NCBI GenBank assembly: GCA_946965045.2
Contig: OX337241.1
Coordinates: 372,001-436,000 of the forward strand
Length of the DNA stretch: 64,000 nucleotides
Reading direction: 5' to 3'
Source: Epithemia pelagica
Lineage: Eukaryota; Protista; Bacillariophyta
Shown here: positions 24,794 to 64,000 of the stretch, piece after piece
Position numbering within the stretch: position 1 is the first letter of the stretch
How the letters are laid out: each line of letters opens with the position of its first letter
The notes under the pieces: generated by a model
What the model was told of the DNA's origin: nothing
Seen by the model: the letters and a program-made list of their open reading frames with translations, nothing else
The model's database searches: none
Position numbers and translations under genes: made by a program

Positions 24794-26020
24794 TTCTACG
24801 GATACATTGTGAATTGACCCGTATACGAGAACACCAACACCCACACCACGCCCCAGTCGCAACAAGAATCAAAGAACTAGTTCCATACGAAAGAGAGAGA
24901 GAGAGAGAGTCGTTGGGGTTTGAAACCCTGGATCCAGAAGCGAATGATTCTTTGATACCAATGAATGGATTCTGTGAAACCAACAAGACAGTGCGAAAAC
25001 ACCAGAACATTAGTAGTAGTGCCATTGTGGTCTTCTCTTGAGGAACGCGCAAGTAAAACGTTCTATTATATTTACTGGTTGAGCGTCTCCGAGTACCATC
25101 TTATACATTCATCTCCTTGTATTAACAGCCGACCAACTCTCTCAACATATATAGGTGACAGCACGCACTGAAGGACCCCAAATAAAACGAACCACAACGA
25201 TTTGAGCAGGACAATGCAATTGTCGTAGTAGTAGTAGTCAACAAGAACCATTCGAGTAGTAGGATCCGGAACAAGCCAAACACTGTGTCGGTTCCAGATG
25301 GCGCGTTTGAAACGTGAATTGTGCCACGCGGCAATTTTGGTTCCAACCAACTACCACTATCGAAAACGTCTTGTTCCCATTCCGAATCATACGAATCTCT
25401 TTCGTACCGTGTGGTGTCACGACCGTTTCGTTTCATCTCCGTCTCATTATCATCATCATCATGTCCACAACACCCACGACTCTGGACAAGAGCTGGGGGT
25501 ACACTCGACTCTGCTTCATGATGGTACTTGGTCCACCACTTGTCGTGATCCATATCTCGTGGTGCAGCAGCATTCTGAATGGTAAGACACTGTAGGTCGG
25601 ATGTTATCGTGGTGGTGTTGTACTGGCAGAGGGTTTCTCGACCTTATGTGCCACCATGGGTTCTTGGCACAAAACAACAGGATCGCTCCACCCTGTCCGT
25701 GTTGTGAGTGATGTGGGATTGCATCTCACACTGTGCCATATGCTCTATATGACTGTCTGTGGATCCCATTCTCTCTTTATCTCATCGGCAGCCAACTCCA
25801 CCAACCTGTCTCGAGGGGCACAACTCGTGTGGACCCTGTGTCATGTTTGCCTTTACATTACCAGTAAGTGAGAATTGGCTGGATGTGCATGCATCCGCTT
25901 TCCATTCACGTGTCGTACTCGGTTGATTGTTGGTATCGTTCTTTGATTGCTCACTGGAGGTCTCTCTCTTGTTCTCTTGTACCGTTCAAATCACGGAGAG
26001 CAGATTGGATCGAACTTGGC

Positions 26021-27769
26021 ATGTACATGGCACAACGACTCAAGAATCATCCCATCTCGCATCCTTCGTCCACTTGTAATCCCGGGACGGTTCCTCCCAG
26101 TTGTAACGAGCGCATGATGCGTGATGCAAGTGTACGGGACACTGCCAACCTGTGCTCCGACCACAATAAGAATAATAAAAAGAAGAAGAAAGACGAGGGA
26201 AACCAGCACAATGACCAGGACAACAACAACAACGACGACGACGACGAAGAAGAAGAATGGTCCCTGATTCATGGAGGAGGAGAACCGTCCTTGTTTCCAG
26301 CATCCAACCAACCAAAACTACGAAACAATGCACAAAATAATGTCATGAAAAAGGAACAGACAAGTACGGTGGACAAATCACTGCCATCATCCACAGTGGA
26401 CCCACCAAGAGACACTGTGCAGTCTTCCAGTAGCCAAATCCGCAGCGACCAAGGCAAGAGATCCATTGTGACCAACTCGAGTGATAAAGTTGCCACCCAA
26501 ACGTCGTCATCCTCCGATACTATCATGTCCAAACACCCCATGGTGGAGGAATTTCTCTGGGCCATTCGATGGATCACCCAGATTCTGATCACCCTCCTTT
26601 TCGTTATTCCTTGGGTGCTAGGATCTATGCGGTCCAGCTGGCTGGTTCCTTATTCCTGGTTGCACCATCCTCCTCGAGCAGCCCCGTCCTTCTTTGTGGA
26701 ATATTCCCGAACCGAGCTTCGTCAGAATCCCGAGGCTCGTCGAGCGGCGCAACAACTCTTTGTGGAAGCGTCCCACGCCTATCAAACCTTGATCACGGCC
26801 ACGCCCAATGAATTGCAAGCTCACATCGCGGAGTGGCACCGTCCACCTCGCCCTTGTGACACTTGGTTCCTCCTCCCTACACTGCTTCGCGTGGTCGTTT
26901 GGACGTGTACGGCCCTCTTGGTCGCGCGCACCATGGTGTATTGGTACTCTTGCAGGATCCAGACGGCCGTTGTCAACCAGCCATTGGACGTTCCTCCAAA
27001 GGAAACCAACAACAAGAATGATAGTCGTTCGACCAACGTCACAAAAAAGGACAGGGACCCGAACAAAACGAGTGCCAACGCATCCATCCTCCCCAAACAC
27101 TGCAACAACAACAACAACAACAACAATAGTTGCAGCGCTATCCAGCCGGCGGGTGAGGCTCATAACGACGACAAAAATGATAGTCCTTCGACAAACGTCA
27201 CAAAGGACACGGACCAGACAACGAGTGCAGACGCATCCATTCTCCCCAAACACTGCAACAGCAACAACAGCGCTCTCCATCCGGCCGGTGAGGCCCGTAA
27301 CTTGATATCCAATCAGGACTCTTTTCGTTCCGAACACACATCGAAAGAAGAAACCAAAGGGCAACCACCACCACAAACGATTTCTCTCGACAACTCGTCC
27401 CATTCCAGAATCCTTGGAATCTCCTCCAGCTACTGGTCTTACTTCCAACAACACACCCACAGTATTCTTATTTTTATTTGGAACACAGTGGTCTATTGGA
27501 ATGCACAAACCACAAAGGTGATGGAGCATTGGATGTACCACAATGGTCGTTTCACCCCGTGTCTGATGGTGCTCAGTGTCCTGCTAAGTCACTTGTTGGT
27601 GCCGTGGATCGACTCCTTGTGGAACCTGGATCCGTGTCGTCACACGACGGACCACCCGAATCCCTTTGTGGCACTGCACATGGAGGAGCCCACAACCGAC
27701 TTGGATCTCATCAAGCAAGCCTATCGCAAACTCTCCCTCCTCTATCATCCGGATTTTTATTCCGAGTAG
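26021..27769 (+). CDS. Putative membrane protein ending in a truncated J-domain
   Basis: Hydrophobic segments WAIRWITQILITLLFVIPWVLG and LLRVVVWTCTALLVARTMVYWY. C-terminus [35 protein letters not shown]. The start codon is uncertain (first ATG is 26021). Confidence 0.6.
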   Translation: MYMAQRLKNHPISHPSSTCNPGTVPPSCNERMMRDASVRDTANLCSDHNKNNKKKKKDEGNQHNDQDNNNNDDDDEEEEWSLIHGGGEPSLFPASNQPKLRNNAQNNVMKKEQTSTVDKSLPSSTVDPPRDTVQSSSSQIRSDQGKRSIVTNSSDKVATQTSSSSDTIMSKHPMVEEFLWAIRWITQILITLLFVIPWVLGSMRSSWLVPYSWLHHPPRAAPSFFVEYSRTELRQNPEARRAAQQLFVEASHAYQTLITATPNELQAHIAEWHRPPRPCDTWFLLPTLLRVVVWTCTALLVARTMVYWYSCRIQTAVVNQPLDVPPKETNNKNDSRSTNVTKKDRDPNKTSANASILPKHCNNNNNNNNSCSAIQPAGEAHNDDKNDSPSTNVTKDTDQTTSADASILPKHCNSNNSALHPAGEARNLISNQDSFRSEHTSKEETKGQPPPQTISLDNSSHSRILGISSSYWSYFQQHTHSILIFIWNTVVYWNAQTTKVMEHWMYHNGRFTPCLMVLSVLLSHLLVPWIDSLWNLDPCRHTTDHPNPFVALHMEEPTTDLDLIKQAYRKLSLLYHPDFYSE

Positions 27770-28180
27770 CTGTGTAATCTATAAAAAGACGTTTCGCCTG
27801 TACTAAACTAGTACCTCCCAAAGTCCGACCATTTTCCAAGAGATATCATAATAGATGAGGAACCAACGACGAGCACTTCTCCTTTTGTCTCGTTCGAGTT
27901 TGTCAAACGGCAATCAACTCCTCATGTCCTCATGGTGAAATCGCTGTGAGTATGACGTACCTCTGCAAGGAATCATCCCGAATCCCGACAGAAAATTCAA
28001 AACGTCCGGGTCCTTAATGCTCTTCATCCTTTTGTCTTTTGTGTCTTGTGTCGCCTTTGTATTCTTCAACAAGGAAGACTTAACAGCACAATTTCTGAGG
28101 TGTACGTCAGCCAATTCCACCGTCTCTTATTCTTTCTTGAATCTTGAAGCAGGGTCCAATCAGTGTACTAGTTACCAGTG

Positions 28181-50298: not shown

Positions 50299-52971
50299 AT
50301 GATTCTGTCTCGTCTGAAACAGGGCATTCCTCGTCCTACAACCACGACGACCATGACCAGGATGCCACGACGACACCCAGTCTCGAGTCGCTGGACTCAT
50401 CCCTGGAGGGCAACGACCATTCATTGCTGCTGTTTCAGTAGTGCCGCCGTACCAGAAGTCGAGGACGACGATCCTCCCGCATCCCAGCAGCAACAGCAGC
50501 CATTGCACTATCCTCGCTTGTTTGAACCCTTGCACTTGGGCCCCGACATTGGCGTCTTGCCCAATCGTGTCTTGATGGGATCCATGCATACCGGTTTGGA
50601 AGGCACTTCGATGCCCTCGTGGATGATTCCCCTCGTGACGGGTCGTTTTGAGTCGCACAATCATCACAAATCATTGGATCGCATGGCAGCCTATTTTCAC
50701 GAACGCGCTCAGGGCGGCGTCGGTCTCATGGTGACGGGTGGCATTGCCCCCAATCGCGCCGGATGGACGGCCCCCTTTAGTGGTCAATTGACCAATCACG
50801 ACGAAATGGTCCGCCATCAAGTCGTGACCCAAGCCGTGCACAGTGTCCAAGTCCCCATTGTCGGGCAACCACAGCAACCGCAAGCCGCCGGGGGTGAACC
50901 AACCACCACAGATGCCGGATTGCCCTCATCGGTTCCGGCTCGTATTTGTTTGCAAATTTTGCATGCCGGTCGCTATGCCTATCATCCTTGGGCCGTTTCG
51001 GCCAGTGCCACGCAGTCGCCCATTTCGCCCTTTCGGGCACGAGCTCTGAGTCGGTCCGACTTGGACGCCACCAAGCGGGATTTTCTTCAAACGGCCGTCT
51101 TGGCCCAACAAGCCGGATACGACGGCGTCGAAGTCATGGCCAGTGAAGGCTACTTGTTGTCCCAATTCTTGTCCCCCCGCACCAATCATCGCACCGATGA
51201 GTACGGTGGACCCAGCTTGGAAAATCGCGCTCGATGGCCCTTGGAAATTCTGCGCGACATGCGACAGGCCGTGGGACCGAACTTCATTATTATTTTTCGA
51301 CTCAGCTTGTTGGATTTGGTCAAGGATGGCTTGTCCTTTGACGAATCCGTCATGGTGGCCCAAGCCGTTCAAGATGCGGGTGCCACCATTTTGAATACCG
51401 GCATTGGCTGGCACGAATCGCGGGTACCCACCATTCACACGTCGGTCCCCCGTGCCGCCTTTAGTTTTCCCACTCACGCCTTGAAACAAGCGAATGTCGT
51501 CGACATTCCCATTGTCGCCACAAATCGCATCAATCATCCCCAAACGGCCGAAGACTTGTTGATGCGAGATTCCTGCGATTTGATTTCCATGGCCCGACCC
51601 TTTTTGGCCGATGCCCAATTGCTGCAAAAGGCTCGAACCGGTCAGACGGCCGAAATCAATACCTGCATTGGCTGCAATCAAGCCTGTTTGGATCATGCCT
51701 TTGTCGGCCGAACGGCCAGTTGTTTGGTCAATCCCCGCGCCTGTCACGAAACGGAATTGCCCCAGCGGACACAGCCCCTGCCCCAATCACAACGACTCAC
51801 CCTTGGAGTGGTGGGAGCCGGACCGGCTGGATGTGCCTTGGCCGTCACGGCGGCCCATGAATTGGGCCATGACGTGGTCGTCTACGACAAGGATTGTCGG
51901 ATTGGTGGACAATTTCAAATGGCCCAACAAATTCCCGGCAAGGAGGAATTTACCGAAACGCTCCGCTACTTTGAGACACTCTTGCACAAGCCCCCGACGA
52001 CGACAACGACGACGCCCAATAATGACGACAACACGAACGACACGAACAATCGTCGTCCCGGATCGATTGAGGTACGATTGAATACGTACTTGACGGCGGC
52101 TCAAATGGACGCTGACACGACGGTCGACGTGTGGATTGATGCCACGGGCGTGGAACCACGCAATCCCCACATTCCCGGACAAGACCACGCGCCCAATGTC
52201 GTCACGTACATTGATGTCTTGAAACATCACGTACCTGTCGGTCAGCGTGTCGCCCTCATTGGAGCCGGCGGCATTGGCTTTGATGTGGCCGAATACTTGT
52301 TGCATCATTCGGCAGCGGATCAGGATACGACAGTCACGGCACCGGCCGATGTGGATCCGCAAACCTTTTGGAAGACGTGGGGAATTGATACCAGTTTGCA
52401 AACGCGAGGAGGATTGGTCTCGTCCGCCGAGAACGACAAGAACCAGAAACACGAGACGGCATCCTCGTCCCCCCAACCACAACGACAATTGTACTTGTTG
52501 CAACGCAAAACGTCCAAATTGGGCAAGGGATTGGGAAAAACCACGGGATGGATTCATCGAACCACCTTGAAACAATCGGGGGCGGTGGAAATGATTGCCG
52601 GTGCCACCTACAACGAAATTGACCCACAAGGCCGATTGCACATTTCCATTACTGACCCCAAGAACAAGACCACCAAGACGAATCGAGTTTTGGACGTGGA
52701 TACCATTGTCCTGTGTTCCGGACAAGTGGAACATACCACACTCCGAGACGAAGCGTCTCCCGCGTTGCGGCGACGCCTCTATGCCATTGGTGGAGCCTAT
52801 CAGGCGGGAGAATTGGATGCGAAACGTGCCATTGACATGGGAACCCGGTTGGCCCACCAATTGCATACCCTCCACGCACAAGATACGGATGCTTCCACCT
52901 ATGTGCATCCCGGACCACCACCACCGGGCGTGGAACAATCCATGTTTCAACTCTTGAGAAAACTCATGTAA
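50299..52971 (+). CDS. fadH: NADPH-dependent 2,4-dienoyl-CoA reductase, FadH type (FMN / 4Fe-4S / FAD)
   Basis: LPNRVLMGSMHTGLE, GYDGVEVMASEGYLLSQFL, SMARPFLAD, Fe-S motif CIGCNQACLDH, GAGPAG, GAGGIGFDVAE, ELDAKRAI. The N-terminal extension looks like an organellar presequence. Confidence 0.92.
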   Translation: MILSRLKQGIPRPTTTTTMTRMPRRHPVSSRWTHPWRATTIHCCCFSSAAVPEVEDDDPPASQQQQQPLHYPRLFEPLHLGPDIGVLPNRVLMGSMHTGLEGTSMPSWMIPLVTGRFESHNHHKSLDRMAAYFHERAQGGVGLMVTGGIAPNRAGWTAPFSGQLTNHDEMVRHQVVTQAVHSVQVPIVGQPQQPQAAGGEPTTTDAGLPSSVPARICLQILHAGRYAYHPWAVSASATQSPISPFRARALSRSDLDATKRDFLQTAVLAQQAGYDGVEVMASEGYLLSQFLSPRTNHRTDEYGGPSLENRARWPLEILRDMRQAVGPNFIIIFRLSLLDLVKDGLSFDESVMVAQAVQDAGATILNTGIGWHESRVPTIHTSVPRAAFSFPTHALKQANVVDIPIVATNRINHPQTAEDLLMRDSCDLISMARPFLADAQLLQKARTGQTAEINTCIGCNQACLDHAFVGRTASCLVNPRACHETELPQRTQPLPQSQRLTLGVVGAGPAGCALAVTAAHELGHDVVVYDKDCRIGGQFQMAQQIPGKEEFTETLRYFETLLHKPPTTTTTTPNNDDNTNDTNNRRPGSIEVRLNTYLTAAQMDADTTVDVWIDATGVEPRNPHIPGQDHAPNVVTYIDVLKHHVPVGQRVALIGAGGIGFDVAEYLLHHSAADQDTTVTAPADVDPQTFWKTWGIDTSLQTRGGLVSSAENDKNQKHETASSSPQPQRQLYLLQRKTSKLGKGLGKTTGWIHRTTLKQSGAVEMIAGATYNEIDPQGRLHISITDPKNKTTKTNRVLDVDTIVLCSGQVEHTTLRDEASPALRRRLYAIGGAYQAGELDAKRAIDMGTRLAHQLHTLHAQDTDASTYVHPGPPPPGVEQSMFQLLRKLM

Positions 52972-53084
52972 CACGTGTCTCAACCAACACAGGGGGGAGA
53001 AACTACCGTTTGTGTGAGAGATAACAAATAATACTAGGTACGAGTCCATCTATTCCAAATAGCATCGATATCGTTTCTTGTACA

Positions 53085-56042
53085 CTACACAGCAAATGCC
53101 AAGGCAGCATTGGCGACATGTTGATGATCCATGACAGGCTGCTGCACTTCCTCCTGTACATCACCAACCACCAAGGAACTGACACTCATTTTGGTATTGC
53201 CCGTTCCACTCGACAGTTTTACAATCACACTCGTGTCGTCACTGGGAAACAATTGGGCGGTCAATGGGGTATCGTCCTCTTCCTCTTCTGAATTCTCGTT
53301 GCAGTCTGATTCTTCCACGACCTCCGTGTTGTTGTGAACTTTTTCGGTCACAACAAGCGTGTCGTCCTGGTGGGGTTGCTTATCATGGTCGACCACATCG
53401 TCCGATTTGTTGTCGTCATGATCAATGCTGGAACACCCTTTTCTAATTTTGGAGTCGTACTTGTTGGCCAAGGACAACATCAAGTGTCCGATATAAACTT
53501 GAATGAACAAGAGCAATCCCATGGCCAAGGAAAGAACCATGGTAAAGGTTTGCTTGGTGATATTGCCCATGTCGAACCACTCCGAAAAGCTGTGCGCACC
53601 GAGTTTCCACGAGGCATCGGCTCCTGATCCACTTTGTGCCAAGACGGTAGCCACCATACCAATCACGGCGAGCTTGCAGACGATAAACATCCATCCCGAT
53701 ACCCGACAGAGAGGTGGCCACCAAGGCCGATGAGCATAGCCAAAATTCTTGAGCAACAATGTCAAGTAAAAGGGTTGTTCCGTCACTGCCATGAGTGTCA
53801 ATTGCATTCCCACCTTGACACAAACTACAAACCCAAAGGTCGAATTGGCCGTGGCGTAAATGAAAATGACCAAGAGAACCGCCACTGAATGGTGTAACAC
53901 AACCGTCCATCGAATTTGAATGCGATAAAAGAGCTCCACCAAGTACAACAAGGATTGTACCAGTATCATGCATCGGGCCAACTTCCATGTTTCTTGTCCC
54001 GTTGCCGCGTCATAGGTATCCGTCGCAGGAAAGGTACGGATGACTTCCGTCAACACAATCGGCAATGCGACCAAACTGAAGACGAGATGAATGACATAAA
54101 TGGTAGTATTCCGACGTTCCCGTTCGGAATCAATGCGTTGGATACGAGGCCATTGCGACACGATAAAACCACTGGCAAAAATGAAAATGACAATTGTCTG
54201 AGCAGGAATTTCCGGAGACGCAAATGTCGTTTTCGGCAATTGCACTTGATCACGAATCACCAATTCACAATTACTTTCATCTGCCATTGGCTGATAAAAG
54301 CTATCTGCATTGGGCTCAAACTGTGCGAACTCGTACTCCAAAGTTTCCGGAAGGCGACCATCGGACAATCCCATGTAGCATCCCAAAAATGGATCTCCGT
54401 CCTTCATCATGTATCCCACTGCATAATCCACATTGGGAAGTTCAGGAGCTATACCCAAAACCAATACACACATTTCGTCATCCATCGACCACCCTCCAAC
54501 AATGTCACGATCGGGCAAGGGACGGTAGCTACAGGTTACAATCAAAGTATCTCCGGGCAGGAGTTTCCACAAATCTTATGTCGGTGCTTCCGCATCAAAG
54601 TCGTACATATCATACTGAACGACGTTTGCAATGTGAACACCATTGCGAATGAGTTTGACTTGAGCTTGATATCCAGCAACTTCGTTCATATGCACATGGG
54701 ACGAAAATACTTGGACGCCTTGTGTTGGTATAATGGCTCGTGTCGCATCCGATGAGATTTGAAACGACAAGGACAGTTTGCGGCGTTGTGGATCAGCTGG
54801 TATCTGAATGGTACTGTGTTGTCCGTACATATGAATCAGTTGACCAGGGTTGGTCAATTGACTGGATGCGACTACCAACGGTGGTTCCACCCACAGACGT
54901 AATCCCACCGAGTCATCTTCAATATCCGAACCATCAGAGTTGTCATAGTGGACCATGAGGACGTATAGACCCTGACGAAGCGGAATATGAACGGATGCTG
55001 GAGTTTCGATAATACCAGAACCGGCTTGGGTGAAATGGCGCTCGCACGATTGAGGGACATAATCCATACAATTCGAAACGACAACACCGTCCTCAAACAG
55101 CGATGGATCAAGAGCTTCGGGATCTCTGCAATGGTATACCACTTGATGATGCAGGTAGGATGGATACGTCGATGAATCCATACCAGCAGTATTTCCACTC
55201 CATGCGACTTGAACAGCAATTAAATTCAAATCAAGAGGCATGGAAAAGGCGGCGCAACGATGAGCTATGGTCTCGCTGGAGCTCACAGTTGTATTCATCA
55301 GCTGGACGTCTATAGCAATTGGTGCAGTCGATGTCATAGGATTGCCATGGAAACGGACACCAGGACTCAGAAAGCTTGAAGAACTAACGCTGTCGGGTTG
55401 GCCATCGGTGGCAGAGTCTTCTTCAGGGATATCTGGTAACACTAGCTTCCTAGCAGTCAATAAGTCTTCATCCACGAAAAGGTTCACCAATGCCTTGCCA
55501 TACTGGGGACCATGATATTGGATATCTCCTGTTTCTGGATCGGTGGGACCTGAAGCACAGATGATGTATCTCTTTGTGGCCACTGTAATGCTCATATCAT
55601 CTTTATCACACGTTTCCAGTCGTCTTCTCAATAAGGCGCGTATCCGATCTTGATCATCGACATATGCTTGCAATAGTTCGACGTTCTGCAAGACATCCAG
55701 TTCTGGTTTCTCGTAGTCTTGAGAGTAACGGTCATCGACTTCGAAACCGTTGTCATTATTAATCCTTCGGACCATCATGATATCGGCACCTCGCATGCCA
55801 CGTGTTCCGGACAAGCCCAGTCCTACCCAATCAGCTCCAGGGACACTTCGAACCGCAAAAGTTGCTTGTTGGGCTTCTCGATCAATCGTCCATTCGACAT
55901 CGGAACATCCAGTTCCCTCCACCTCCACTCGCCGCTCCAGTCCAAACTCATTCTTTGTTGAGGTCGATGCGACTGAAGATGAGCATAGAGCGTGGGTCAA
56001 CAACAAAAACAGAGCTTTTACTCTCCTGCCTTTTGGCCACAT
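53085..56042 (-). pseudogene. DOMON + copper type II monooxygenase (DBH/MOXD1-like) + multi-pass TM domain, with one in-frame TAA
   Basis: ORFs 56054-54576 and 54572-53085 are in the same frame, separated by TAA GAT (...DFDAEAPT*DLWKLLPGDTLIVTCSY...). Signal peptide; DOMON WVGLGLS...GMRGADIM; copper ligand motifs LHH, LMVHY, HVH and DEMC; about 7 TM segments at the C-terminus. Confidence 0.8.
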
Positions 56043-56391
56043 TTCAGTTCGCAATTCGTGTGCTTGTCCACTTGATGTGTTTCGACGACAGTCGAGAAGA
56101 GAATTTATGAACTGGGTTGTTGTTTTCCTTACTAGCGAGTAAAGAAAAGGACTCTTGTTGCAAAAATTGTGTGTCTACGGTGTTAGGTTCTACGTCTCCG
56201 TTCCCAACTGTCGTCGATGCGTTGAATCGTTGGTGGAGACGTTGTATCACCAATTTGGGCGACGAGATGTGTTATGGACGGGCCTGCCACCGTTCGTGGG
56301 ATATCGCTGCCTCTAAGTATCTTCTGATTCACTTAGGGCCATGGACCGTTATGACAATGGTCATGGGATCCCGTCCTTAAGAACAACAATG

Positions 56392-56760
56392 GGTACGTGG
56401 TGTTTCAAGACATCAATGTACGTGACGACATTTGGCGCTTGGTCTTGTCCGGGAATGTGGGGATTGCGTGGTTCCACGCCCGTGGCATCAATCCACACGT
56501 CAACCGTCGTGTCAGCGTCCATTTGAGCCGCCGTCAAGTACGTATTCAATCGTACCTCAATCGATCCGGGACGACGATTGTTCGTGTCGTTCGTGTTGTC
56601 GTCATTATTGGGCGTCGTCGTTGTCGTCGTCGGGGGCTTGTGCAAGAGTGTCTCAAAGTAGCGGAGCGTTTCGGTAAATTCTTCCTTGCCAGGAATTTGT
56701 TGGGCCATTTGAAATTGTCCACCAATCCGACAATCCTTGTCGTAGACGACCACGTCATGG
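56392..56760 (-). repeat. Inverted 369-bp copy of an internal fadH segment (51867-52235)
   Basis: Base-by-base comparison gives 6 substitutions, no indels (about 98.4% identity) and sharp ends. Confidence 0.95.
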
Positions 56761-56824
56761 TGGGTGAACTGACGTCACATTCTTCATTCTAATGATGCCT
56801 ACAGTGGCCAAACTCTTATTGTTA

Positions 56825-57078
56825 GCAAATGGAGCTTCAATGTTTTTTATTATTGTATATATGCATTTATTTCGTGGGCTCTATTGGGGATCATATATTG
56901 AACCGCGTGAATATATATGGTCATCGGGTGTAATTATTTTATTATTAATGATGGGAACTGCATTTACTGGTTATGTTTTACCTTGGGGTCAAATGAGTTT
57001 TTCGGGAGCGACTGTAATAACAAGTATGCTATCAATTTTACCAAAAGGTCAAATTATCGTTGAATGGTTATGGGGCGG
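56825..57078 (+). pseudogene. cob: NUMT: fragment of mitochondrial cytochrome b
   Basis: AT-rich 254 bp encoding [24 protein letters not shown]...[22 protein letters not shown]...EWLWGG. The conserved W of QMSFWGATVIT is TCG (Ser). Truncated at both ends. Confidence 0.93.
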
Positions 57079-57081
57079 CAA

Positions 57082-57655
57082 ATTCCAGAATCCTTGGAAT
57101 CCTTGGAATCTCCTCCAGCAGCTGGTCTCATTTTCAACAACACACCCACAGTATTCTTATTTTTATTTGGAACACTGTGGTCTATTGGAATGCACAAACC
57201 ACAAAGGTGATGGAGCATTGGATGTACCACAATGGTCGTCTCACCCCGTGTCTGATGGTGCTCAGTGTCCTGCTAAGTCACTTGTTGGTGCCGTGGATCG
57301 ACTCCTTGTGGAACCTGGATCCGTGTCGTCACACGACGGACCATCCGAATCCCTTTGTGGCACTGCACATGGAGGATCCCACAACCGACTTGCATCTCGT
57401 CAAACAAGCCTATCGCAAACTCTTCCTCCTCTATCATCCGGATTTTTATTCCGAGTAGTTGTGTAGTCTATAAAAAGACGTTTCGCCTGTACTAGAGAAG
57501 TACCTCCCAAAGTCCGACCATTTCCAAGAGATATCATAATAGATGAGGAACCAACGACGAGCACTTCTCCTTTTGTCTCGTTCGAGTTTGTCAAACGGCA
57601 ATCAACTCCTCATGGTGAAATCGACTCTCGGGGCTGCTGTGAGTATGACGTACCT
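57082..57655 (+). repeat. 574-bp copy of the 3' end and downstream flank of the J-domain gene (27402-27962)
   Basis: About 18 substitutions plus four indels (+9 tandem TCCTTGGAA, -1, -8, +13). The copy keeps YHPDFYSE* and about 190 bp of 3' flank. Confidence 0.95.
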
Positions 57656-57727
57656 GCATGGAGTCGTTCTTGGGTCGCTGAAAGATCCCGATAGAAAATT
57701 AGACCGCTTCGCGGTAAAGAGTCGACT

Positions 57728-57876
57728 AAGTTCAGTATCTGTTATCTGTGCAGTGGAATCCGTGACTGAACGAACCAGAAGTACTGAAATATGTAGACTA
57801 CTTAGGAGTGAGAATAAAGAGAGACGGTGTAACTGAACTTGCTCTGTACTCCTGGGAGTAGTTATGGAATTCTAGT
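57728..57876 (+). other. Inverted repeat + hairpin + CTAG/T junction (Helitron/Helentron-like terminus, tentative)
   Basis: AAGTTCAGT (57728-57736) and ACTGAACTT (57832-57840) form a 9-bp inverted repeat. Hairpin TACTCC-tg-GGAGTA at 57847-57860, 11-nt spacer, CTAG at 57872-57875, then T. The sequence pattern is certain; the element interpretation is weak. Confidence 0.3.
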
Positions 57877-60800
57877 ATCCACATGTTTTGGAATGTGAAA
57901 CTGTTGTCACTTATAGTCCACGCCATAAGCTATCTGAAACTGCAATGCAATTTGGGTTCGGCAACTTTGATGGTATACTTGATCCTGTTCGACTTGAGGC
58001 TATTGTACTACAAGATTTGGCGCCATTTGTTTCGTGTGAGAACAACTCTAGTATCCACATGTTTTGGAATGTGAAAATGTTGTCACTTATCGTCCACGTC
58101 AAAAGCTATCTGAAACTGCAATGCAATTTGGGTGCGGCAACTTTGATGGTATACTTGTTCCTGTTCGACTTGAGGCTATTGTACTATAAGATTTGTCGCC
58201 ATTTGTTTCGCGTGAGAACAACTCTAGTATCCACAGGTTTTGGAATGTGAAACTGTTGTCACTAATAGTCCACGCCATAAGGTAGATGATGATGCAATGC
58301 AATTTGGTTCGATAACTTTGATGGTATACTTGTTCCTGTTCGACTTGAGGCTATTGTACTATAAGATTTGTCGCCATTTGTTTCGCGTGAGAACAACTCT
58401 AGTATCCAAAGGTTTTGGAATGTGAAACTATTGTCACTTATAGTCCACGTCATAAGGTAGCTGATAATGCAATGCAATTTGGGTGCGGCAACTTTGATGG
58501 TATACTTGTTCCTGTTCGACTTGAGGCTATTGTACTATAAGATTTGTCGCCATTTGTTTCGCGTGAGAACAACTCTAGAATCCACATGTTTTGGAATGTG
58601 AAAATGTTGTCACTTATAGTCCACGCCCAAAATAAGCTTATGATGCAATGTAATTTGGGTGCGGCAACTTTAATGGTATACTTGCTCCTGTTCGACTTGA
58701 GGCTATTGTACTACAAGATTTGTCGCCATTTGTTTCGCGTGAGAACAACTCTAGAATCCACATGTTTTGGAATGTGAAAATGTTGTCACTTATAGTCCAC
58801 GCCCAAAATAAGCTGATGATGCAATGCAATTTGGGTTCGGCAACTTTGATGGTATACTTGTTCCTGTTCGACTTGAGGCTATTGTACTATAAGATTTGTT
58901 GCCATTTGTTTCGTGTGAGAACAACTCTAGTATCCACATGTTTTGGAATGTCAAACTGTTGTCACTTATCGTCCACGGCATAAGGTAGCTGATGATGCAA
59001 TGCAATTTTGGTGCGGCAACTTTGATGGTATACTTGTTCCTGTTCGACTTGAGGCTATTGTACTATTAGATTTGTCGCCATTTGTTTCGTGTGAGAACAA
59101 CTCTAGTATCCACAGGTTTTGGAATGTGATACTGTCGTCACTTATAGTCCACGCCATAAGCTATCTGAAACTGCAATGCAATTTGGGTGCTGCAACTTTG
59201 ATGGTATACTTGTTCCTGTTCGACTTGAGGCTATTGTACTACAAGATTTGTCGCCATTTGTTTTGCGTGAGAACAACTCTAGAATCCACATGTTTTGGAA
59301 TGTGAAACTGTTGTCACTTATAGTCCACGTCATAAGGTAGCTGAAAATGCAATGCAATTTGGGTTCGGTAACTTTGATGGTATACTTGTTCCTGTTCGAC
59401 TTGAGGCTATTGTACTATTAGATTTGTCGCCATTTGTTTCGCGTGAGAACAACTCTAGTATCCAAAGGTTTTGGAATGTGAAACTGTTGTCACTTATAGT
59501 CCATGTCATAAGGTATCTGATAAATGCAATGCAATTTGGGTGCGGCAACTTTGATGGTATACTTGTTCCTGTTCGACTTGAGGCAATTGTACTATTAGAT
59601 TTGGCGCCATTTGTTTCGTGTGAGAACAACTCTAGTATCCACGTGTTTTGGAATGTGATACTGTTGTCACTTATAGTCCACGCCATAAGGTATCTGATGA
59701 TGGAATGCAATTTGGGTGCTGCAACTTTGATGGTATACTTGTTCCTGTTCGACTTGAGGCTATTGTACTACAAGATTTGTCGCCATTTGTTTTGCGTGAG
59801 AACAACTCTAGAATCCACATGTTTTGGAATGTGAAAATGTTGTCACTTATAGTCCACGCCAAAAAAAGGCTGATGATGCAATGCAATTTTGGTGCGGCAA
59901 CATTGATGGTATACTTGTTCCTGTTCGACTTGAGGCTATTGTACTATAAGATTTGTCGCCATTTGTTTCGCGTGAGAACAACTCTAGTATCCAAAGGTTT
60001 TGGAATGTGAAACTGTTGTCACTTATAGTCCATGTCATAAGGTATCTGATGATGCAATGCAATTTGGGTGCGGCAACTTTGATGGTATACTTGTTCCTGT
60101 TCGACTTGAGGCTATTGTACTATTAGATTTGTCGCCATTTGTTTCGCGTGAGAACAACTCTAGTATCCAAAGGTTTTGGAATATGAAACTGTTGTCACTT
60201 ATAGTCCACGCCATAAGGTATCTAATAATGTAATGCAATTTGGGCTCGGTAACTTTGATGGTATACTTGTTCATGTTGGACTCGAGGCTATTGTACTACA
60301 AGATTTGTCGCCATTTGTTTCGCGTGAGAACAACTCTAGTATCCAAAGGTTTTGGAATGTGAAACTGTTGTCACTTATAGTCCATGTAATAAGGTATCTG
60401 ATAAATGCAATGCAATTTGGGTGCGGCAACTTTGATGGTATACTTGTTCCTGTTCGACTTGAGGCTATTGTACTATAAGATTTGTCGCGATTTGTTTCGC
60501 GTGAGAACAACTCTAGTATCCAAAGGTTTTGGAATATGAAACTGTTGTCACTTATAGTCCACGCCATAAGGTATCTAATAATGTAATGCAATTTGGGCTC
60601 GGTAACTTTGATGGTATACTTGTTCCTGTTCGACTTGAGGCTATTGTACTATTAGATTTGTTGCCATTTGTTTCGCGTGAGAACAACTCTAGTATCCAAA
60701 GGTTTTGGAATGTGAAAATGTTGTCACTTATCGTCCACGCCAAAAGGTAGCTGATAATGCAATGCAATTTGGGTGTGGCAACTTTGATGGTATACTTGTT

Positions 60801-63800: not shown

Positions 63801-64000
63801 ACTGCAATGCACTTTGGGTGCGGCAACTTTGATGGTATACTTGTTCCTGTTCGACTTGAGGCTATTGTACTATAAGATTTGTCGCCATTTGTTTCGCGTG
63901 AGAACAACTCTAGTATCCAAAGGTTTTGGAATGTGAAACTGTTGTCACTTATTAACCACGCCATAAGGTAGATGATGATGCAATGCAATTTGGTTCGGTA
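57871..64000 (+). repeat. Tandem satellite array, 176-bp monomer, about 35 units, continues past the window end
   Basis: The unit TCTAGTATCCACATGTTTTGGAATGTGAAA...GTGAGAACAAC starts at 57871 and recurs at 58047 (176 bp) and onward. About 41% GC in the first unit. Units are head-to-tail, with occasional 1-bp length variants and two 115-bp deleted units. Confidence 0.98.

Follow-up and report, generated by a model that had tools for sequence, protein, structure and literature searches.

Gene fragments, a mitochondrial insertion and a Helitron2-type element upstream of a DOMON-monooxygenase gene in the diatom Epithemia pelagica: a probable stack of break-repair scars

Introduction

The stretch of DNA considered here, hereafter the window, comprises 64,000 nucleotides of the genome of the diatom Epithemia pelagica. 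It contains a patchwork of captured DNA that occupies the region upstream of a minus-strand gene encoding a DOMON/copper-monooxygenase protein with multiple transmembrane segments (53085..56054). The patchwork consists of an inverted copy of part of a nearby fadH-like gene, a fragment of the mitochondrial cytochrome b (cob) gene and a copy of the 3′ end of a gene with a partial DnaJ domain (the J gene), and it is followed by a 176-bp satellite array. An earlier reading made from the letters alone (the sequence-only reading) had taken this arrangement for a capture hotspot at a gene/satellite border. The observation of the pieces is real, while that first interpretation is largely wrong, as the satellite is the cargo of a Helitron2-type transposon and a presumed filler sequence is an old flank. 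The patchwork is, with good confidence, a stack of independent and ordinary break-repair scars upstream of the DOMON-monooxygenase gene and not a satellite-linked hotspot. The main value of the analysis lies in this correction, namely that a mosaic at the edge of a satellite represents unrelated events side by side.

Sequence Sources and Loci Compared

The window is part of the 496-kb contig ctg1289l of the ENA assembly ERZ21939226, and a window coordinate equals the record coordinate minus 387284. The same contig was read past the end of the window, out to window coordinate 91986, through the loci L002, L007 and L008. This assembly includes both haplotypes, and the second haplotype is represented by contig ctg1270l (locus L009), which carries the allelic J gene (96% amino acid identity) and the allelic fadH-DOMON region. 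Two tandem units are distinguished on the window contig: U1, which lies within the window, and the paralogous unit U2 at 76480-82435 in window coordinates. A further site, locus B, is unlinked and is found on two haplotigs, L010 and L011. The module formed by the cob flank, the cob piece and the J piece is thus available in five copies: U1 in two haplotypes, U2, and locus B on L010 and L011. Four loci of paralogous RepHel (L003-L006) were fetched from other contigs for comparison. Contigs from public sequencing runs were Logan unitigs, which are short and end at each branch, and which confirm branches and alternative flanks, not long-range spanning or copy number. They confirm the alternative flanks of U2, the donor, mitochondrial DNA (mtDNA) and locus B; they also branch exactly at 57700, and one of them crosses the cob|J join.

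Organization of the Patchwork

BLAST of positions 56000-58000 against the window identified 56392-56760 as the reverse complement of 51867-52235, with 6 differences in 369 positions, and matched 57097-57665 to 27408-27974 at 93.2%. The limits of the pieces were refined from these BLAST values by base-level alignment. From left to right, the region starts with native upstream sequence of the DOMON gene, termed up57 (56055..56116), that is common to U2 (80590-80646) and locus B. It is followed by Y, a dispersed repeat of about 272 bp (56117..56390) that is recognized by its k-mer depth and its TGTTG...CAACA ends, and that is absent from U2 and partial at locus B. The inverted fadH copy of 370 bp (56391..56760, minus strand) corresponds to fadH 51867-52235(+3). 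Next to it lies the old local flank of the cob piece, 64 bp long (56761..56824), which in U2 (81298-81364) and at locus B is contiguous with an intergenic stretch termed X′. The cob piece, a nuclear copy of mitochondrial DNA (NUMT) of 255 bp on the plus strand (56825..57079), encodes the residues ANGASMFF...EWLWGG and matches the Pfam family Cytochrome_B.

An AA dinucleotide explained by neither source (57080..57081) stands at the cob|J join, followed by the left part of the J piece (57082..57700, plus strand), which corresponds to the donor from 27402 to about 28012. The right part of the J piece, about 70 bp, lies beyond the Helitron and beyond the window at about 76263-76335 and is colinear with the donor. 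The 9-bp tandem duplication that the sequence-only reading had seen near the J junction was aligned at 57088-57096. At 57701..57870 lies the 3′ terminal region of the Helitron2-type element on the minus strand, with an inverted copy of the 5′ end, a hairpin and the end C(T/C)AAT. The 176-bp satellite array, internal cargo of this Helitron, is also on the minus strand and extends from 57871 to the window end at 64000 and on to 66254.

Both nuclear donors lie inside the window. The J-piece donor (27402..28066, plus strand) is the 3′ end of a 633-aa open reading frame (ORF; 25868-27769). The donor of the inverted piece (51866..52238, plus strand) is inside an 890-aa FadH-like gene (50299-52971), and this gene also has a 17-bp palindrome, GGCCCA-TGAAT-TGGGCC (51852..51868), at which two breakpoints fall. 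BLAST, alignments, Pfam and the second haplotype together confirm what had been claimed from the letters alone: three sharp-edged pieces, two nuclear and one mitochondrial, with the nuclear ones derived from fadH 51867-52235 and from the J gene at 27402 to about 28066.

A chimeric assembly had been named as a possibility to be excluded. The 40-mers across five joins (up57|Y, Y|inverted fadH, inverted fadH|flank, flank|cob and cob|J) were all found on ctg1270l with 0 mismatches. The DNA of this contig is 4.6% divergent overall from the window. Since all five joins are exact on such a divergent second haplotig, the patchwork is real and a chimeric assembly is excluded. The J|Helitron 40-mer is found on ctg1270l with 2 mismatches, and a 115-nt public-run contig bridges the cob|J join. 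The non-transposon joins have either 0-3 bp of microhomology or, at cob|J, the two untemplated bases AA. The inverted fadH piece has GGG (3 bp) on its left and C (1 bp) on its right, GC is found at the tandem join, and the locus-B joins have 0-2 bp. No target duplication, terminal repeats or poly(A) were found at the J piece, the inverted fadH piece or the 2.48-kb patch of locus B.

The J Piece

The donor of the J piece comprises the last ~368 bp of the coding sequence of the 633-aa ORF and ~295 bp downstream. This ORF has a partial DnaJ domain at its end, with the HPD motif and a match to Pfam DnaJ. The J piece lies about 30 kb from its donor, as had been estimated, and is about 665 bp long, not about 570 bp; the Helitron splits it at 57700/57701 and it resumes at about 76263. 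Measured against either J allele, the J copies show 5.4-6.6% substitutions, and 26 differences are fixed; between the two alleles the figure is 2.35%. When a closer J paralogue was sought, only the allelic gene (96% amino acid identity) turned up; the J piece is therefore truly old. The 9-bp duplication is present in both U1 haplotypes and at locus B, and is found neither in U2 nor in the donor.

The Mitochondrial Fragment

The ORF in the cob stretch matches the Pfam families Cytochrome_B and Cytochrom_B_N_2. Its closest foreign cob protein, at 84% amino acid identity, is of metagenome origin, and the named cob matches in the list are pennate diatoms, namely Amphora (77%) and Pleurosigma and Phaeodactylum (74% each). 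Public-run contigs at 40-100x nuclear depth, taken as mitochondrial from that depth, match the cob piece at ≥98%. From exactly 56825, one such high-depth contig extends in the upstream direction into further cob sequence, which confirms the left edge. The NUMT is embedded in nuclear DNA, with five copies distributed over four nuclear contigs that measure 0.45-2.07 Mb. A protein word search, in which the best non-self match was the 84% one, did not recover the mitochondrial cob of the organism itself, probably because the gene calls break this gene at TGA codons. The NUMT, at ≥98% to mtDNA, may be younger than the J piece or may simply be tied to a slowly changing source.

At 56886-56887 the window copy alone has GG, and the other four NUMT copies have AT, which restores the conserved cob motif LYYGSY. 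This GG is an adjacent double change, like the change from GG to AA at 54576-54578 in the DOMON gene. All five module copies (56792-57466 in the window) have kept open an ORF of 217-224 aa that leads out of cob into J without keeping the J frame. Gene callers label this ORF Cytochrome_B, and it is probably a chance ORF and an annotation trap. The ORFs of this kind, which lie on four nuclear contigs, are chimeras of NUMT and J and not genes; the chimeric ORF of the window clusters with members on three further contigs.

The Tandem Unit U2 and the Daughter Copy at Locus B

The tandem unit is 6.07 kb long and extends from the middle of fadH (51853) to 160 bp past the J piece. U2 matches 51853-56117 at 98.3-99.8%, 56760-57700 at 97.6% and 76263-76481 at 99.1%. 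The U1|U2 join reads ...TTATGC|CCATGAATT..., with 2 bp of microhomology, and falls at fadH 51853. The J piece of U2 is unbroken and colinear with the donor from 27402 to about 28066.

Locus B (L010 8974-11453, L011 8974-11454) is a sharp-edged 2.48-kb copy that lies between a PAP2 gene and glucan-synthase genes. It consists, in order, of 120 bp of DOMON coding sequence, up57, a partial Y, a U2-like stretch termed A-W-A′, cob and the left part of J, followed by the same J|Helitron join as in the window, the 170-bp Helitron tail and 2.1 satellite units. The Helitron part of locus B amounts to 0.55 kb of the 3′ end, and its satellite-side edge falls inside a satellite unit. The right join of locus B is present as a loose end in one public run. 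The 9-bp duplication, Y and the Helitron are found in U1 and at locus B and not in U2 or the donor, so the source of locus B was the U1 lineage, at a time when the tandem duplication had already occurred. The 940-bp flank-cob-J module has five copies that are only 5-7 substitutions apart, and all of them carry both cob and J, which therefore predate the other events.

A block of 270 bp is present twice in U2 and locus B (80590-81364), with 97.8% identity, and a stretch of 238 bp, W, separates the two occurrences. The block is composed of the 57 bp upstream of DOMON, a 146-bp stretch termed X and the 64-bp flank, and its doubling around W is another small duplication with an insert.

The Inverted fadH Piece

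The fadH donor gene matches Pfam Oxidored_FMN and Pyr_redox_2. In U1 the inverted piece stands in place of about 0.65 kb of older sequence, the X...X′ stretch, which U2 and locus B retain and which would represent the state before the event. The 64 bp at 56761-56824, described earlier as unknown filler, are contiguous with the older intergenic X′ in both of these places and are therefore the old flank of the NUMT. The count of 6/369 differences between the inverted piece and fadH was right in the sequence-only reading, and these differences are allelic polymorphism: on haplotype 2, the inverted copy shows no difference (0/369) from the fadH allele of that haplotype, and the copy in the window differs from the same allele at 1 site, a private change. 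In U2, the partial fadH carries a 3-bp deletion and 7 private substitutions. A co-arising of the inverted piece and the tandem duplication, suggested by a star-like three-way divergence, was considered and dropped as the main reading, as the 'private' changes were states of the other allele. The 131-aa ORF at 56397-56792 is antisense fadH and should be annotated accordingly.

U2 starts at 51853 and the inverted piece ends at 51867, on two bases that would pair with each other in the hairpin stem of the 17-bp fadH palindrome, which has a DNA fold of -7.6 kcal/mol (z -2.07) and occurs once in the window. Two breakpoints at one palindrome hint at a locally fragile site. They also speak for a rival account, in which one replication-based event, be it microhomology-mediated break-induced replication (MMBIR), fork-stalling with template switching (FoSTeS) or snap-back synthesis at the fadH palindrome, made both the duplication and the inverted piece, and gene conversion later refreshed the piece. 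The two breakpoints are 14 bp apart and would pair within one palindrome, a proximity with a chance of roughly 0.1-0.5%; moreover, the cob-J module is framed by inverted repeats, with the inverted piece on one side and the start of U2 on the other, and all three joins have 1-3 bp of microhomology. Nevertheless, a single event does not sit well with the ages of the copies, as the partial fadH of U2 carries 7 private substitutions and an indel against 0-1 in the inverted piece. Locus B weighs further against it, since this copy came from U1 with Y, the 9-bp duplication and the Helitron, yet has the U2-like stretch from before the inversion. As locus B combines U1-specific events with a stretch that was later replaced, the inverted piece is later than those events. 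The choice is between one fragile site used twice and one complex event whose traces gene conversion has obscured; locus B speaks for two events, and we regard the single event as unlikely.

The Helitron2-Type Element and Its Satellite

The J piece is interrupted by a Helitron2-type transposon of 18.6 kb that extends from 57701 to about 76262 on the minus strand. Its RepHel ORFs (66255-71971, minus strand) match Pfam Helitron_like_N, DUF6570 and PIF1, and 8-9 RepHel paralogues on other contigs have 95-99% amino acid identity. Elements of the Helitron2/Helentron type are marked by a 5′ end that is repeated in inverted orientation near the 3′ end, together with a 3′ hairpin. Here, TCGTCTAAGTTCAGTAT is common to the window and to L003, L005 and L006 at the 5′ end, an inverted repeat of it (16/17) lies just before the 3′ hairpin, and the tail closes with this hairpin, ACCGC-GAA-GCGGT, and then C(C/T)AAT. 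The homology of L005 and L006 to the window spans the satellite and the 170-bp tail and ends at 57698-57700. A 5′ end at about 76324, taken from copy-to-copy homology, was replaced by about 76262 from the empty site.

This empty site is U2, in which 81298-82220 corresponds to 56760-57700 and 82217-82435 to 76263-76481, so that U2 is continuous across the insertion point. U2 reads GAAAATTC where U1 has GAAAATT, the 18.6-kb element and AATTC. Comparison of the empty site GAA-TTTT-C with the filled site indicates insertion into a T-run with no target duplication. Since U2 has cob and an unbroken J piece but no Helitron, cob and J were in place before the Helitron and its satellite. Logan unitigs from two runs end exactly at 57700, as expected where filled and empty sites both exist.

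The satellite array (57871-66254) begins at the helicase stop codon and is bounded on its other side by the 170-bp Helitron 3′ end. The same layout of RepHel stop, array and 3′ end is found in L003-L006 with other array lengths, and the lengths among copies are 2.5, 6.7, 8.4 and >10 kb. The 176-bp satellite is internal cargo of the transposon and not a chromosomal satellite border. In L004 (1-12685), two RepHel copies stand head to tail about 6.8 kb apart, and the first has no satellite array after it. Contigs that match the segment 57722-57822 of the 3′ tail at ≥98% have a depth of ~7-8 in two runs, against ~200 for single-copy DNA, and of ~2900 in a third run of the same sample; this unevenness may come from library type or filtering.

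Read-through at the 3′ end is a known route by which Helitrons capture flanking DNA, and the sequence-only reading had listed Helitron gene capture among the possible origins of the pieces. The pieces would then have travelled with the element, and locus B would be a transduction. Locus B does join the Helitron 3′ end to the same J, cob and upstream sequence as the window. However, the pieces lie outside the termini that are common to L003, L005 and L006, whose flanks are unrelated to those of the window; J is found on both sides of the element; and U2 has cob and an uninterrupted J without any Helitron. The 0.55 kb of 3′ end at locus B is broken within a satellite unit, has no Helitron 5′ end, and an inspection by eye of the far end of the patch gave no terminus-like signal. 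Capture by the Helitron is accordingly very improbable.

Less probable still is a capture hotspot at a heterochromatin edge (centromere or subtelomere) that samples nuclear and organelle DNA, which the sequence-only reading had preferred and which would account for several patches within 1.6 kb and for the repeated rearrangement of the module. The array limits described above are not those of a chromosomal satellite border; the satellite lies between Helitron termini and arrived after cob and J, the cob-J module of U2 has no adjacent satellite, and at L005 and L006 the host DNA in which arrays of this satellite end is unrelated.

The Y Repeat and the DOMON Gene

The stretch 56118-56389, which the sequence-only reading had passed over, is the dispersed repeat Y by its k-mer depth, about 10-20x that of single-copy DNA, and by several different left flanks in public runs. 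Y has TGGG on both sides, and over its first 57 bp it shows 83% likeness to the end of the long terminal repeat (LTR) of a neighbouring Copia element (88394-88450). These features point to an insertion that is solo-LTR-like or like a miniature inverted-repeat transposable element. BLAST of Y, X, W and a further stretch, S, against all DNA fetched gave no source except this 57-bp LTR-like match of Y. At locus B, a 19-22-bp repeat of the sequence on the far side of Y stands in place of the left 100 bp of Y. The Copia-type LTR retrotransposon itself (82598-88450) starts 160 bp after the end of U2, has 463-bp LTRs that are 99.4% alike, and matches RVT_2.

The DOMON gene has an in-frame TAA at 54576-54578 in the window haplotype, where the other haplotype and U2 have TGG, and it is a single 985-aa ORF in L009. 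The U2 copy lacks 95 bp (54782-54875), so that both DOMON copies of the window haplotype look damaged.

Order of Events and Proposed Mechanism

The divergence of the J piece, the differences among the module copies, the state of locus B and the near-identity of the fadH piece place the events in order, and the stepwise accretion proposed from the letters alone is borne out. By sequence divergence, the J piece (5.4-6.6% from both alleles) appears as the oldest and the fadH piece as the youngest. In the first step, a DNA copy of about 665 bp of the J-gene 3′ end came to lie next to the 255-bp cob fragment, with two unexplained bases between them. A 6.07-kb tandem duplication then gave rise to U1 and U2. 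In the U1 lineage, the 9-bp slip, the insertion of Y and the insertion of the 18.6-kb Helitron with its own satellite into the T-run of the J piece followed. Next, a 2.48-kb stretch of this U1 state, with blunt-looking ends, was copied to the unlinked locus B. Finally, the inverted 370-bp fadH copy took the place of about 0.65 kb of U1; A-W-A′ is still present at locus B, and the inverted piece thus replaced that U1 stretch later. The microhomology and the absence of target-site duplication suggest that the non-transposon joins were made by double-strand-break repair. The organelle DNA was likely captured by end joining; for the nearby nuclear pieces, the likely route is 'repair-mediated duplication', in which synthesis-dependent copying is combined with template switching.

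Several points weigh against a stack of independent scars. No unfilled site for J and cob was found among the copies compared; the two may have arrived together or separately, and the flank and the 160 bp that follow J may be native sequence. The tandem join at 76480 is found on one contig only, the public-run contigs being short unitigs that stop at each branch. The identity of the NUMT to mtDNA is an estimate from depth and from Logan contigs filtered at 98%. Y inserted only 1-4 bp away from a rearrangement breakpoint, which a stack of independent scars does not explain. Gene conversion between the inverted repeats could also give the fadH piece a false appearance of youth, in which case it could be as old as the tandem duplication.

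An assembly artefact, either a chimeric contig or two haplotypes strung into a false tandem duplication, might be argued from that single-contig join and from the finding of only about 0.7 of sampled words in the runs, but it is scarcely credible given five exact joins on a 4.6%-different contig with an allelic J gene, a U2 that is structurally unlike both U1 haplotypes, an arrangement mirrored at locus B on two further contigs, and unitigs of two runs that stop exactly at 57700, in keeping with filled and empty sites.

The stack of independent break-repair scars remains the explanation that we favour. A bolder extension is that templated-patch repair is unusually active in this diatom, with stretches of 0.3-2.5 kb, including composites and transposon ends, copied into breaks nearby or on other chromosomes, and with short palindromes, of which the fadH one would be an example, as recurrent break sites. 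We consider this extension doubtful. If many such patches were present genome-wide, they would constitute a significant undescribed route of gene-fragment shuffling and NUMT multiplication in diatoms. The locus itself provides a well-resolved time series of break-repair patches with rare controls, including a tandem paralogue with an empty site, a second haplotype and an onward copy.

Comparison with Known Systems

Helitron2/Helentron-type elements with tandem-repeat arrays are known from Cg_HINE of oyster (PMC7492417) and DINE-1 of Drosophila (PMC4067079). The element described here resembles them in its RepHel, its inverted 5′-end repeat near the 3′ end, its hairpin, the lack of target duplication and its variable internal array. 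It differs from them in being an autonomous-looking 18.6-kb copy with a kilobase-scale array right after the helicase stop, and it is a bystander to the patchwork.

Complex tandem duplications attributed to MMBIR, FoSTeS or polymerase-theta snap-back share with this locus the microhomology, an inverted copy beside a breakpoint and a palindrome. In contrast to such duplications, the ages of the sequences here indicate at least two separate events, and the likeness of pathway is one of sequence features only.

NUMTs are inserted at double-strand breaks by end joining (Hazkani-Covo & Covo 2008, PMC2567098; reviewed in PMC2820518), and mosaic organelle insertions are known (PMC6215612). The cob piece is similar in that it is a short mitochondrial fragment with sharp ends and 0-2 unexplained bp at its join, is intergenic and lies beside another captured fragment. 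Unlike those cases, its partner fragment is nuclear and not a second organelle piece, and nuclear duplication rather than recurrent transfer has carried it to at least three places, represented by five sequenced copies.

The closest parallel for the nuclear pieces is repair-mediated duplication of nearby chromosomal DNA by synthesis-dependent strand annealing (PMC2671141). Repair-mediated duplications are sharp-edged copies of a few hundred base pairs of linked DNA in either orientation without target duplications, and the J piece (30 kb) and the fadH piece (4 kb) fit this description. The known events are vertebrate, linked and up to 619 bp long, whereas the present ones are found in a diatom and include a 2.5-kb composite copied to an unlinked locus. 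Here, moreover, the patches are stacked with NUMT and transposon insertions, and the J event is without an empty site. Taken together, the case is a well-documented instance of known processes in a diatom.

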